NCBI GenBank assembly: GCA_021613535.1
Contig: CP075493.1
Location: forward strand, 7,378,001-7,442,000
Reading direction: 5' to 3'
DNA: 64,000 nucleotides
Origin: Adineta vaga
Taxonomy: Eukaryota > Animalia > Rotifera
A program made the translations under genes and the position numbers. This document shows, one piece after another, positions 4,963 to 11,589 of this stretch (its first letter is position 1; each line of letters starts with the position of its first letter). Below the pieces are notes generated by a model that did not search any database, was not told where the DNA came from, and worked only from the letters and a program-made list of their open reading frames with translations.

Positions 4963-7772
4963 ATGTCTTGCAACAATTGTAATGTGAATTTAGCTGGTGT
5001 AGAATATGTTGAAAAAGATGATAAAGATCTATGCATCAGTTGTTTTAATCTATTATTTGGAAAAACATGTACAAAATGTCAAATGTTAATACCTGCTGGC
5101 ACTAAAGTATAACAGTTTTCGATGGTAAATATATAGATATGAATATTTAAGTGTTTAGTTTGCAACAAATGGAGGAAAGTTTTGGCATAAAGATTGTTTT
5201 CAATGTTTTTCATGTAAAAAGAAATTAACAAAATTTGATATCGGTGATGATGAACAATTTTATTGTCATGCGTGTCATAAGGAAAAGTATGGTCCAAAAT
5301 GTATTGTTTGTCATAATGGTATCGTTAAAAGTTAGTACGAATGAATGAAAAAATTCAGTAATTGTATTTGTTAAACTTGATTTTTAGGTTTACGTTATGT
5401 CGAAAATGAAGGCCATTTGTTTCATGAAGATTGTTTTCGATGTAGTTCGAAAACATGTGGGAAAAAGTTAGATGATGGTTTTATTCCTAAAGATAATCAA
5501 TTCTTTTGTCAAGAATGTTACCGTGAAATAGAGTCAAAGGTATATATTTTATGACTATATTAAATAGGTTTTTTCCAATCAATATGTTCGTTCTGTTTTC
5601 AGCATACTTTCAAAGAAACATTCACTTTTGCTAGTCTCATTTTTACGTAAGAAAATGTATTCAAAATTAAACCTTTTGAAAGTTTATGTATATCTTATAT
5701 ATATATATAGCGAGTTAGTACCTGAAGAAGACAAGATTTTAAAATCAATGGCACAATCATTCAAAACTGAATTGACATCAAAAATTCAACCAATCATTAA
5801 AACTCTAAACATTCCGAGAGTGTCCAAGGAAAATTTATTTTTTATTACGACTGATCAAACTCAAACAATTTCATATCTATTTCCAAATATTATCATGAAT
5901 ACAACAGTCTCGAATGGATCTATTCAATTACGAAGTGGTGACTTAGCTAAACAAAAAGTGAGTTATATTACGGAGAACATATTGCATGAACATCTTCTTT
6001 TGTTTGATTTTTTAGGTTGATGTCATTGTTGTCTGTTCAACATCAGAGATACTTCTTAAAAATATCCTACAACAAGCAGGTGTAACTGTTGCAAACGAGT
6101 ATCATCGATTATCAACATCAGTCAATCCACAAGACTCTATTATAGAAACAGGACCAGGAAATTTAAGTTGTCAAGCAATTCTATTTTATCGTTGGACTCC
6201 ACCAACAGATCGCAATAAAACAAAACTATTGACTTCAATATCTGAATATGTATCGAAATTATTAGGTCATATACTTAATCACAAGAAAGTCTATCGAACA
6301 GCAGCATTTCCACCTGTTGAATATGGTTTATCACAATGTCCATTGGATACTATCGCAGAAGCAATGATTAATACAGCTGTAACAAAACTTGCTGAAACAT
6401 TACTTTATTTTACTATTTCATTTATCATTTTACCGAATGAATTTAATGTTCATCAAAAATTTGCAGAGAAATTAGCATCGATACAAAAACAATTAGAACC
6501 ATTTGGTCATGTAGAGTATTCATTGTCACGTGAGTAAAAAATATACATTCGGAAATATAGGAAGTAGAATAATAATTGCTCTCGTAGAAATAAATTTAAC
6601 ATTAACTGCTAAACAAGAAACGAATTTGAAACAATGTGGATCGGCTATTCGAACTTATATGAATACATGTACACAAATCAAATCACACGAAAATGACGAT
6701 TTAAATGTTTGGACACAACAATTAGTTATGAATTTTTATCAACATTGTCTGAATCGTCATATTTGGCCAATGATTAATTTGGAACAAAAAAAATTGACTT
6801 TAACTGGAAAAAAAGAATCGATTGATGCAGCGGATCGACATTTTCTTGAATTAACAAATCAAGCTTTAAAACAATTGCATTTGAAAAATATTTCACGTAA
6901 TGTTGTTTGGGAATATCAAATTGATGCAACGACATGGCAAAGTTATTCATATAATTGTATTGGTGAAATTGAATATGCTCGTACTATTAAAAATTTACCA
7001 ACAGTTTGTATACAATCAATAGGAAACGATCTTCAATTGTTTCATTTATCTTTTAGATTGAGATTACTAATGAACAAGATGAGTTATGTCAAATTAACTT
7101 TGCAAATAGTACAGAAACATTTAATGATCGTATTCGTGCTATTCGACAGCGACATTTAATTAGTGTCAGGTTACCTAATCATTGGCAATGTCAATCAGGT
7201 AATTTCTGTCGTTTTTTACTCAATGAAGATACAGATGAATACAAAAATGTCAAACAATTATTTGATCAAACGATGGCAAATTTATATGTATCTATCAAAT
7301 CTATTGAACGTATTCAAAATCAACGATGGTATAAACAATATACTGCACATCATGAAGCCATGAGTGAACGATTGAAAGAAAATATCGAAAAACGATTATT
7401 TCATGGTTGTACTGAAACAGCAGCTAATAGTATTGTTGAAGAATGTTTTAATCGTTCTTTTGCAGGAATTAATGGTAAATTTATTTATTCAATATCTTCG
7501 TCACAATAAGCAATTTTCTTTTAGGTACGGTCTATGGTCGTGGTGCTTATTTTGCTGCCAATGCTAATTATAGTCATCAATATGCACTACCCAATGCAAA
7601 TGGTGACCGTTATATGTTTGTTGTTTCAGTTCTTGTTGGAAAATCTACTCTTGGTAATACATCAATGAAAGTACCACCATCAGGTTATGATTCAACAACA
7701 GATAATAGACAAATTTTTGTTGTTTATCATGACGCACAAGCTTATGCTGATTATTTAATTACATATCAATAA
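4963..7772 (+). CDS. FHL-type LIM (half + 2) - Macro - WWE - PARP catalytic fusion (PARP14/15-like mono-ART), about 784 aa, 9 exons
   Basis: Exons 4963-5106, 5159-5330, 5388-5539, 5603-5646, 5711-5957, 6016-6529, 6588-7003, 7057-7474, 7525-7772 total 2355 nt in one frame with GT-AG introns. Motifs: CNNC..CISC, CTKC..HKDCFQCFSC..CHAC, CIVC..HEDCFRC..CQEC; GDLAKQKVDVIVV; VVWEY..WQSY; LFHG, YGRGAYFA, YSHQY, IFVVYHDAQAYADYLITY. Confidence 0.88.
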
Positions 7773-8002: not shown

Positions 8003-8120
8003 ATTTTGATATGCACTAGTAATAAAAGAATCATTTATAACTAGTCAAAGTATATATGATAAAAAAGTCTGGAAGAACTTGATCTAAGATACTATTAATG
8101 AGTTGTACGTAATTTCTGTT

Positions 8121-8197
8121 GCCTCAGTTTCAATACCTTCTCAACATGATTTATTCATGACTGTTGAGCTTGAACGGTAGTTTGAATCATCATCGGT
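8121..8197 (-). ncRNA. Box C/D snoRNA copy 1, LSU rRNA 2'-O-methylation guide
   Basis: ATGATGA (C) - TCAAGCTCAACAG guide - ATGA (D') - ATGTTGA (C') - CTGA (D). The guide is complementary to the conserved LSU rRNA segment CUGUUGAGCUUGA. This copy has ACC/GGC termini. Confidence 0.78.
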
Positions 8198-8307
8198 TAA
8201 TATCATGGATAGTATCTGAATAGGTTTGCTTTTTGTATTTAATTTTAGAAAAAGTCTGGAAGGACTTGATCTAAGATACTATTAATGAGTTGTACGTAAT
8301 TTCTGTT

Positions 8308-8384
8308 GCCTCAGTTTCAATACCTTCTCAACATGATTTATTCATGACTGTTGAGCTTGAACGGTAGTTTGAATCATCATCGGC
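8308..8384 (-). ncRNA. Box C/D snoRNA copy 2
   Basis: Same boxes and guide, with a GCC/GGC terminal stem. Confidence 0.8.
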
Positions 8385-8494
8385 TAATATCATGGATAGT
8401 ATCTGAATAGGTTTGCTTTTTGTATTTAATTTTAGAAAAAGTCTGGAAGGACTTGATCTAAGATATTATTAATGAGTTGTACATTATTTCTGTT

Positions 8495-8571
8495 GCCTCA
8501 GTTTCAATACCTTCTCAACATGATTTATTCATGACTGTTGAGCTTGAACGGTAGTTTGAATCATCATCGGC
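8495..8571 (-). ncRNA. Box C/D snoRNA copy 3
   Basis: Same boxes and guide, with a GCC/GGC terminal stem. Confidence 0.8.
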
Positions 8572-8681
8572 TAATATCATGGATAGTATCTGAATAGGTT
8601 TGCTTTTTGTATTTAATTTTAGAAAAAGTCTGGAAGGACTTGATCTAAGATATTATTAATGAGTTGTACATTATTTCTGTT

Positions 8682-8758
8682 GCCTCAGTTTCAATACCTT
8701 CTCAACATGATTTATTCATGACTGTTGAGCTTGAACGGTAGTTTGAATCATCATCGGC
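8682..8758 (-). ncRNA. Box C/D snoRNA copy 4
   Basis: Same boxes and guide, with a GCC/GGC terminal stem. Confidence 0.8.
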
Positions 8759-9519
8759 TAATATCATGGATAGTATCTGATTAGGTTTGCTTTTTGTATT
8801 TAATTTTAGAAAAAAGAAAAGAAAAGAAAAGAATGAACAGCAGCAGCAGCAGCAAACACACATACGCACGCATGCGCATTGCGCATCGGCGATAGTTTCA
8901 GAAGAGAAAAGAAGAAAAAAGATGATATGCATACACACTCACAACTACAAAGTTTTCCGGTGTGCATGAGGTAATGTTCTAAAGTTAGTGGCGTGTGAAT
9001 GACAAGAAAAACCGTATCAAAAAGAAAGAAAGAAAGAAACTTTGCTACGGTAATAACGAAAGTCCATATGTTTTGGTCGTAACAATAAAAGAGAAAGAAA
9101 AACAGAGAGGTAACAACAACAACAGCAACAACAAAAAAGATATCTCAATTGTTGAAGTGCAATACACCATCCACAACAACAATAACAACAACAGCAAAGA
9201 AGAGGAAAAAAATACCTACGAAATCGGGCGAATATCTTAACAAAAGTTTTGCTTTTTAATCGAATCCATTCACTAGGTTTTGACGTTGATAAGTATAACA
9301 AAGAAGAGAAAAGTGAAAGAAGAAAAAAACCAGAAATAACAATGATCAGGCAGAAGAGAGAAGAAAAAATGAAGAAGAAACTGTTCTACAAAATGTGTGT
9401 TATAACGCTTGCTGATTTCAGACTAAAAGAAGAAAATGTTGGGAATAGCTTAGAATGAAGAAATACGCAAGAACAGAGTTCAGTTTTCTTTGTTTTTGTT
9501 TTATGTCAATTTAACCATC

Positions 9520-11589
9520 TTACTGTTTTGAAAGATTAGGAAATTCATCTGGATTATCAAGTGATGGTGCATTTGGATCGGCATTGTTACGTCCTTGACG
9601 ATAGCCACGAGTTGGACGACGATAATCACCACGATCACCACGGCCACCACGTTGACCGCCTCGATACGAATCATCATATTGTTGAGATGATGGTTGTTGG
9701 CCTTGACTTGGTGACGTAGCTAAATGAAGAAGAAAACGAAATTTGTTTCAAGAAAATGATAAATATCTATCTGTTTACATCTTTGTTGTTCATCACGATT
9801 GGGGCGGAAACGGCCTCCTCCGCGGCGTTGTCCACCTGAACCACGTGGAATTTCAATTGGTTTGAAACGAAGTGGAATAGCAATAAGTTTTTTCTTTCCA
9901 CTCGTATGTTCTTCTTCATCACCACTTTCATTTTCTAAATTAATTCAAAGATATACAATGATTTGAATTACTATCCATAGATATGAACAAACCTTCAACT
10001 TCGCTGCCTTCTTCTTCTTCTTCATCTTCGTCATCATCGTTTTTCTTACGATATTCATGACCCAATTTTAGTAATGATTTTGGATCTTCACCTTCACCAG
10101 CAACACGTGTTTTGAATTGCGGTAATTTTTCTTGATGAGCTCGTTTTTTTGCTTCCAATTGTTTTTTATATTCATCCAATGTCATTTGTTTTTCGGCTTC
10201 TTCGACTTGTTGTGCCCAATCTTTTGATACTGGCGCGGATTGTGCTGTTGTTTCATTTATTTCACTAAAATTGATTTTAAATCAATAAAAAAAAACATCT
10301 TTTTATAGAAATAATCAAATTATCTTACTCAGAAACTGGATGTTCTTCAGGATTTTCAGTTGGATTACCCCAGTTGTGAGCACCTTCACCATCTTTTTTC
10401 TCGATTGGTTTCACACCACTTGAAATAGAGTAATAAGGATTGAAATTTATCATCTACTAGAATCATCATTATTCTACTTACGAAACAAATGAACGTGGTT
10501 GACGATCGTTTTGGCGACGATTGGCTCGATAATCTTCTTGACCAACTTCACCACTTTCACGATCACCATAATTACGAAATCCTCGACCACGATAGTTACC
10601 TCGATAATTACGTCGAGTATTATCTGCTTCAAATGATCGATCTGTTGCTAATGCATCTTGGTCATACTCACGATTTGATTGTGAACGACCGCCTTCAAAA
10701 TTTGATCTAGATACGAAAAGTATACTTTGAGTTTTATATAATCTTTTCTAAACAGATCAGTGATTTACTCCAACTGATTTCTTTTTTTAAGGATAGAAAT
10801 AAAATATCTCAAAACGATCGCTCGAAAAGCTTGATTTAATGCATTTGTGTGTAAGAATAAAATCATCAATTCAAACTATACGTACTCGGAACTTTGTTGC
10901 CATCCGGTGCCTTCTTGTTGTGGGCCTTCTTCTTGGCTTCGATTATTGAAATTTCCACGTCCACCACGACCACGACCACGGCCACCAGTACCACGGCCTC
11001 CTTCGAAATTGCCACGTCTTGGTCCACCACGTCCACGGCCACCACGTGCTCCTCCTTCATTACTCCAAGCATCACCACCTTGATCAAATGAACCTGATTC
11101 ATTCGCTGACGATGAACCTTGTCCGTCGAATTTGTTGAAACGTTGCGAACGGCCACGACCAGCACCTTCAAAAGGTGGCCCGCCTCTTCTTGAACCACCA
11201 CGAGAGCCTGGAAATAAAACAAGTCTTTTGTATTTAAAAAGAAAAGAAAACGACTTATGAAACACACCTCGTGCACTATCACCACGTGGTTGATTATTAT
11301 TATCACCGAATACAGTTGCTGAAGTCGCTGATTGTTGTCTTCGTGAATCAACATTTGTTGATTTTGTTGTTAAATTTTCTTTATTAGTTTTCGTCGTCGT
11401 TGTTGTTGATGTTGTTGTTTTACTGGTCACTTTCTTGCCTATTGGTTTGGAATCTTTTGTTGAAGACTTTCTTTGTTTTTCTTCTTCTTGTGTTTGGGCA
11501 GCAATAAATGCTTCTGGTTCTTCATCGTGATCAACAAATTGAAGAAAACGATTTCCTGTATTAATACCGTATTCAAAATCAAGCACCAT
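9520..11589 (-). CDS. SERBP1: SERBP1/HABP4 (PAI-RBP1) family RGG RNA/ribosome-binding protein, multi-exon
   Basis: N-terminal YGINTGNRF, RGG boxes, GVKPIEKKDGEGAHNWGNP, QMTLDEYK and C-terminal APSLDNPDEFPNL are all family signatures. Confidence 0.9.

Follow-up and report, generated by a model that had tools for sequence, protein, structure and literature searches.

In human cells, box C/D snoRNAs that lie downstream of a poly(A) site give rise to the SPA lncRNAs, whose 5′ ends are formed by Xrn2 trimming (PMC12084880, PMC11028025). In SPA1 and SPA2, the snoRNAs are SNORD107 and SNORD109A, which sit behind the weak SNURF-SNRPN poly(A) signal (PMC12084880, PMC11028025). The reviews consulted describe this post-cleavage read-through route only for the long SPA RNAs of human and mouse. 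A second precedent concerns an rRNA modification. Arabidopsis 25S Gm2410 was mapped by RiboMethSeq; neither human nor yeast has a listed equivalent, and no guide for it was found (PMC8583080). It lies 12 nt before Um2422, the counterpart of yeast Um2421, and is adjacent to Um2411, which has been assigned together with Gm2392 to AtsnoR29 (PMC8583080). Dictyostelium has no Gm2410-equivalent site (PMC8817022). Our literature searches on rotifer snoRNAs, on Z107/R87 and on a trypanosome equivalent returned nothing usable.

The bdelloid rotifer Adineta vaga has six chromosomes that form the homoeologous pairs 1/4, 2/5 and 3/6 (PMC8494291). Here, we describe a repeat in a 64-kb window of chromosome C1, where the window means the whole stretch of DNA that was analysed. 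Judged by its sequence, this apparent 187-base satellite is confirmed as four recent copies of an unannotated small-RNA gene. Each unit is very probably a single-guide box C/D snoRNA gene with a predicted guide for 28S G2773, which is the best explanation overall. The gene is real and ancient, unannotated until now and recently quadruplicated, and an unusual biogenesis is plausible for it.

A fourfold array of small-RNA genes

TRF reports the minus-strand array with a period of 187, 4.0 copies and 98% matches (Table 1). Each unit runs from a T-tract through a poly(A)-signal-like hexamer and the 77-nt snoRNA to a 3′ spacer of ∼54 nt. The initial annotation had read this tandem repeat as four box C/D snoRNA genes, each packing boxes C, D′, C′ and D, a guide and a terminal stem into 77 nt, with an interior common to all copies and changes limited to the spacers and one stem base. 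The array and the unit sequences agree with that reading: the anatomy holds on the minus strand, and the six variable positions among the units comprise five in the spacer and one at the outer terminal-stem base of copy 4. Zero changes in the 70-nt core across units has P = 0.057 for six sites, so the avoidance of the core is weak by itself and the evidence of constraint is conservation across loci.

Table 1. Coordinates of the array, its elements and the neighbouring gene in the window
Feature	Position	Strand	Basis or remark
Tandem array, 4.0 × 187 bp	8062..8814	-	TRF and sequence
snoRNA copy 1, 77 nt, 3-bp terminal stem	8682..8758	-	Sequence, fold, window scan
snoRNA copy 2, same sequence as copy 1	8495..8571	-	Unit comparison
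snoRNA copy 3, same sequence as copy 1	8308..8384	-	Unit comparison
snoRNA copy 4, G>A at its first base, with loss of the outer terminal-stem pair	8121..8197	-	Unit comparison
Box C (AUGAUGA), copy 1	8748..8754	-	Last five bases invariant in seven aligned sequences
13-nt D′ guide, copy 1	8722..8734	-	Complementary to 28S 2771-2783; D′+5 base 8724 pairs with G2773
Box D′ (AUGA), copy 1	8716..8719	-	Invariant in seven sequences; CUGA in the same register in ∼20 non-rotifer homologues
Box C′ (AUGUUGA), copy 1	8702..8708	-	Invariant in seven aligned sequences
3′ arm of 9-bp internal stem	8690..8698	-	Pairs with 8747-8743 and 8740-8737; in place of a D guide
Box D (CUGA), copy 1	8685..8688	-	Invariant in seven aligned sequences
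Predicted poly(A) signal of SERBP1 (ATTAAA), 50 nt before box C	8799..8804	-	Function inferred
ATTAAA repeats in the other units	8612-8617, 8425-8430, 8238-8243	-	Sequence
SERBP1 3′ UTR region, conserved blocks, no conserved splice donor	8805..9519	-	Cross-locus alignment
SERBP1/HABP4-family gene, intron-containing, probable transcriptional host	9520..11589	-	Pfam PF16174 and PF04774; synteny

All the features of a box C/D methylation guide that sequence can test are present in the predicted RNA. Box C (RUGAUGA) lies close to the 5′ end and box D (CUGA) close to the 3′ end, a pair able to form a kink-turn; box C reads AGGAUGA in the chromosome-4 copy, and the D′ box AUGA is non-canonical. The 3-bp terminal stem is paired in six of the seven sequences, with 2 bp left in copy 4. 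The D side of the predicted RNA is targetless, and a putative 9-bp internal stem, formed by the segment before box D and the segment after box C, stands in for a second guide. All cells of this stem (100%) are paired across the seven sequences; one column varies as A-U/G-C/G-U and another as C-G/U-G, and the former holds the D-5 base, on which the choice of a target would depend. This covariation lends support but is not decisive, because it involves one column only and the shuffle control was not beaten (55/500, not significant). From established box C/D biology, the rotifer snoRNA would assemble with Snu13, Nop56, Nop58 and fibrillarin.

Three other candidates were rejected. A second guide before box D would form a duplex of 7–8 bp at best with rRNA or with U1, U2, U4, U5 or U6, and its D-5 base covaries with the 5′ arm. 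For a pre-miRNA hairpin, which long self-pairing had suggested, the fold z-score is weak (−1.3 to −2.0), and the conserved segments are precisely C/D boxes and guide. Finally, a second snoRNA at about 8003-7969 (−), with a box C and a CUGA, is probably chance, its box C not being conserved in three orthologues.

The genome searched (100.8 Mb, six contigs) contains one other copy, a single one in the same gene context on the C4 homoeologue, where the match in a DNA search covers the snoRNA part only (87 nt, 90% identity). A pattern scan of metagenomes returned 58 contigs, some of them plainly chance matches in bacterial genes. Seven represent four further bdelloid-type loci, each single-copy and with guide, D′, C′ and D intact. 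Since the homoeologue and these four loci are all single-copy, the snoRNA gene is old and the array recent. The four signal-plus-snoRNA cassettes on chromosome 1 would stem from tandem duplication that was local and recent, with T-rich microhomology at either end. On its other side, the array is adjoined by the 3′ region of a convergent PARP-domain gene (window 6530-7730, +), which is also present in the orthologous contig L066.

Guide, target and relatives in other eukaryotes

The genome's own 28S rRNA (four assembled copies) carries an exact complement of the 13-nt guide at LSU 2771-2783. The duplex consists of 13 Watson-Crick pairs, inside the 10-21 nt required of such a complement, and ends 2 nt before D′. 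The predicted D′+5 target, 28S G2773, equals yeast G2409 and Arabidopsis Gm2410: the Rfam snR78 consensus anchors the numbering at yeast U2421, which is 12 nt 3′ of the target G. The initial annotation, which had the guide exactly complementing LSU rRNA and had counted the predicted Gm to about yeast 25S G2409, was thus right on anatomy, guide, target and yeast number; what it missed was the ancient single-copy origin, the D-side internal stem and the conserved position behind SERBP1. The target site belongs to helix 74 and corresponds to E. coli G2067, within a few bases of the peptidyl-transferase loop. By the established function of box C/D RNAs, the snoRNA would direct 2′-O-methylation of G2773.

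Such a complement seldom arises by chance. When the 77-mer was dinucleotide-shuffled 20,000 times, 141 of the shuffles (0.7%) contained some 13-nt match complementary to mature rRNA, and 19 (0.1%) contained one followed by a D-like box. Scanning both strands of the window for a C box and a D box with an 11-nt complement recovered these four copies only. The 5′ segment could also pair over 9 nt with 28S at position 281; the chromosome-4 copy lacks this match, which was therefore discarded as chance.

Beyond rotifers, ∼20 distinct eukaryote sequences have a box C, the same guide, the 2-nt spacing and a canonical CUGA, and many of them carry a second guide before box D. Because the metagenome pattern fixed the D′ register, these matches indicate that such RNAs are widespread, without making that register the only one. 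Two of the matches, scoring 51.8 and 56.7 bits, pass the 50-bit gathering threshold of RF00360 (snoZ107_R87), a plant family. The rotifer RNA resembles this family in that its guide equals the 13-nt family consensus, follows box C and is directed at helix 74. However, it is 77 nt long against 117 model positions, scores below listing, and lacks the family's second D guide (yeast G2391 region), having the internal stem there. Rfam scans of the rotifer unit found no family at threshold, with RF00360 unlisted even at E up to 10, and an RF00360 search of the genome found chance-level matches only, none of them a second-guide snoRNA. Because the score and second-guide tests both failed, the rotifer RNA is not filed in RF00360; its predicted action is that of the 5′ half of snoZ107_R87, to which it is probably related.

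The non-rotifer sequences also bear on the Arabidopsis site. The snoZ107_R87 consensus aligns with algal-type homologues, whose canonical CUGA register predicts exactly the orphan Gm2410, and the second guide of the consensus fits Gm2392, the other site assigned to AtsnoR29. A snoR29/Z107-type RNA may guide Gm2410 in Arabidopsis. In two related contigs (L018:3117-3196 and L065:2746-2813), the guide occurs with a canonical CUGA D′ in an intron of RPL12, and the host protein is closest to animal RPL12. These intronic copies in an animal-like host hint that other invertebrates keep the guide and perhaps the methylation site. Second guides among the non-rotifer matches (L015-L069) are of the yeast G2391 type (by inspection) or the G2395 type (L052, L060). 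Contigs L043, L051 and L052 each hold two paralogous copies 460-770 nt apart, and further snoRNAs lie near the homologous guide RNA in ordinary snoRNA clusters: L043:889-985 (Rfam snoR8a) and L055:1237-1312 (snR61/Z1/Z11).

The 3′ end of SERBP1 and the proposed making of the snoRNA

The unusual aspect of this gene is its conserved position directly behind the probable poly(A) site of SERBP1. The SERBP1 stop (9520) is upstream of the array on the same strand, and the snoRNA stands behind SERBP1 on C4 and on the bdelloid contigs too, at all loci with enough flank. Across six loci, 695-827 nt with conserved blocks separate the stop from box C, and this UTR has no AATAAA in any of them. Its sole conserved poly(A)-signal hexamer, in 6/6 loci, is one ATTAAA or AGTAAA that follows a U-rich tract and lies 47-63 nt before box C. 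Because the repeat unit starts at the T-tract, each copy of the array has its own hexamer. Most of twelve ribosomal-protein genes of the genome have a comparable switch from U/GU-rich to A-rich sequence after the stop (by inspection), usually with AATAAA. We infer that the SERBP1 mRNA ends just before the snoRNA. Several 9-14-nt blocks of the SERBP1 3′ UTR (8805-9519) are invariant in both homoeologue types and five other loci, and are probable regulatory sites.

Given a functional gene, the likeliest route to the snoRNA, with a probability slightly above one half, is release from read-through RNA after mRNA cleavage. RNA polymerase II would transcribe SERBP1 and continue into the array, and the transcript would be cut just after the variant poly(A) signal. 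Xrn2 would then trim the uncapped downstream RNA as far as the snoRNP, which stops it, and the snoRNA 3′ end would be trimmed by the exosome. Under the same condition, a promoter of its own is a minority option of some weight, and a hidden intron and any other route are each improbable. A fuller proposal is more tentative and falls somewhat short of an even chance: bdelloids would make an rRNA-guide snoRNA from post-cleavage RNA that is normally destroyed, as an ancient SERBP1-snoRNA tandem unit. Each 187-bp unit would be a self-contained cassette of poly(A) signal and snoRNA, and the array a four-snoRNA polycistron cut by the cleavage machinery without splicing or RNase III, serving a plant/protist-type site that human and yeast lack.

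The main rival is a set of independent genes, because T-rich and TATA-like sequence also stands upstream of rotifer snRNA genes. The T-tract and TAAATA of each unit would then form a TATA-like promoter, the closeness of SERBP1 would be incidental synteny, and the snoRNA and its target would be the same. The U1, U4, U5 and U6 genes have such sequence 25-60 nt upstream, a similar AT motif precedes the fzr start codon, and the T-tract/TATA-like element is included in the repeat unit. However, the upstream element of the snRNA genes is absent, the spacing from the conserved upstream block to the hexamer varies from ∼9 to 36 nt among loci, and SERBP1 would be left with no conserved poly(A) hexamer in its entire 3′ region. 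We consider independent promoters unlikely, though less so than any other alternative. In the 75 nt upstream of the snRNA genes (L075-L084), one element is common to U4 and U6 and another to U1 and U5, each with a TATA-like box after it, ∼30 nt ahead of the start; neither element is clear at the two U2 genes. No tRNA-like A/B-box leader was seen upstream of the snoRNA by inspection. In one bdelloid lineage, the fzr/Cdh1 start codon lies 126 nt after the snoRNA on the same strand (L012:6811-6938, snoRNA-sense strand; also L058), giving the operon-like order SERBP1, snoRNA, fzr; in the window, the convergent PARP gene intervenes.

Of nearly the same low probability is a real snoRNA with a single expressed copy, probably copy 1, or with a fourfold array that is an assembly expansion. 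All other loci are single-copy and the terminal stem of copy 4 is damaged; the metagenome contigs come from short reads, in which arrays may be collapsed, so that single copies there count for little. The array itself argues the other way. From each unit to the next there are 1, 3 and 2 changes, and from the first to the last 6, an ordering along the array that is the pattern expected of real stepwise duplication, and the likely source assembly was built from ONT and PacBio reads (PMC8494291).

Splicing could instead release the snoRNA from a so far overlooked intron, either in the SERBP1 3′ UTR or in a non-coding host. This would be the usual animal snoRNA arrangement, and in the window, L033 and L040 the snoRNA has a pyrimidine-rich YAG after it. 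Such release is nonetheless quite improbable. Neither a conserved donor GT across the six UTRs nor a conserved acceptor after the snoRNA was found; the downstream YAG is missing in L066 and stands at unrelated distances elsewhere. Moreover, the putative intron would span ∼700 nt full of conserved UTR-like blocks. Slightly less credible is a different role for the RNA, which might use another D′ register to methylate the adjacent U (yeast U2410), or act only as an rRNA folding chaperone like snR190. The degenerate D′, the internal stem and the assignment of Arabidopsis snoR29 to Um2411, next to Gm2410, would suit such a role, but the sole GA-containing D′ candidate is the 2-nt register, which is a canonical CUGA in the homologues. 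A non-functional minisatellite with chance box-like words, to which the lack of an Rfam match and a fold z-score of only −1.3 might point, is contradicted by the conservation pattern and very improbable, the 77 nt being selectively kept across homoeologues and species and the guide shared by distant eukaryotes.

Comparison with known systems

As a box C/D snoRNA, the rotifer RNA is of an ordinary guide-RNA type that was previously unannotated, and a recent four-copy array of such genes is unsurprising. Like the mammalian SNORD115/116 arrays and those of plants, trypanosomes and Dictyostelium, it consists of head-to-tail local duplicates (PMC11028025, PMC8817022). It differs from them in having only four copies, in being very recent and apparently non-intronic, and in carrying a hexamer per copy. 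Copy-specific spacer alleles make the tracing of precursors straightforward.

From the guide, an animal rRNA would be expected to carry a methylation beside the peptidyl-transferase loop, at a site known from Arabidopsis and missing from the human, yeast and Dictyostelium maps consulted. The predicted rotifer target is the same rRNA position as Gm2410, which is experimentally methylated in Arabidopsis (PMC8583080).

For the proposed release from read-through RNA, the closest counterparts are the SPA lncRNAs. The sequence layout at six rotifer loci would fit such an arrangement, with the snoRNA on the same strand behind the predicted poly(A) hexamer of a protein-coding gene and outside any intron. 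The SPAs, however, are polyadenylated RNAs of 16-34 kb, whereas the rotifer case, known from sequence, is a predicted small rRNA guide ∼50 nt after the signal of a housekeeping gene. If true, the SERBP1-snoRNA layout would offer a compact and testable example of how a snoRNA can be made from the read-through RNA that follows mRNA cleavage.
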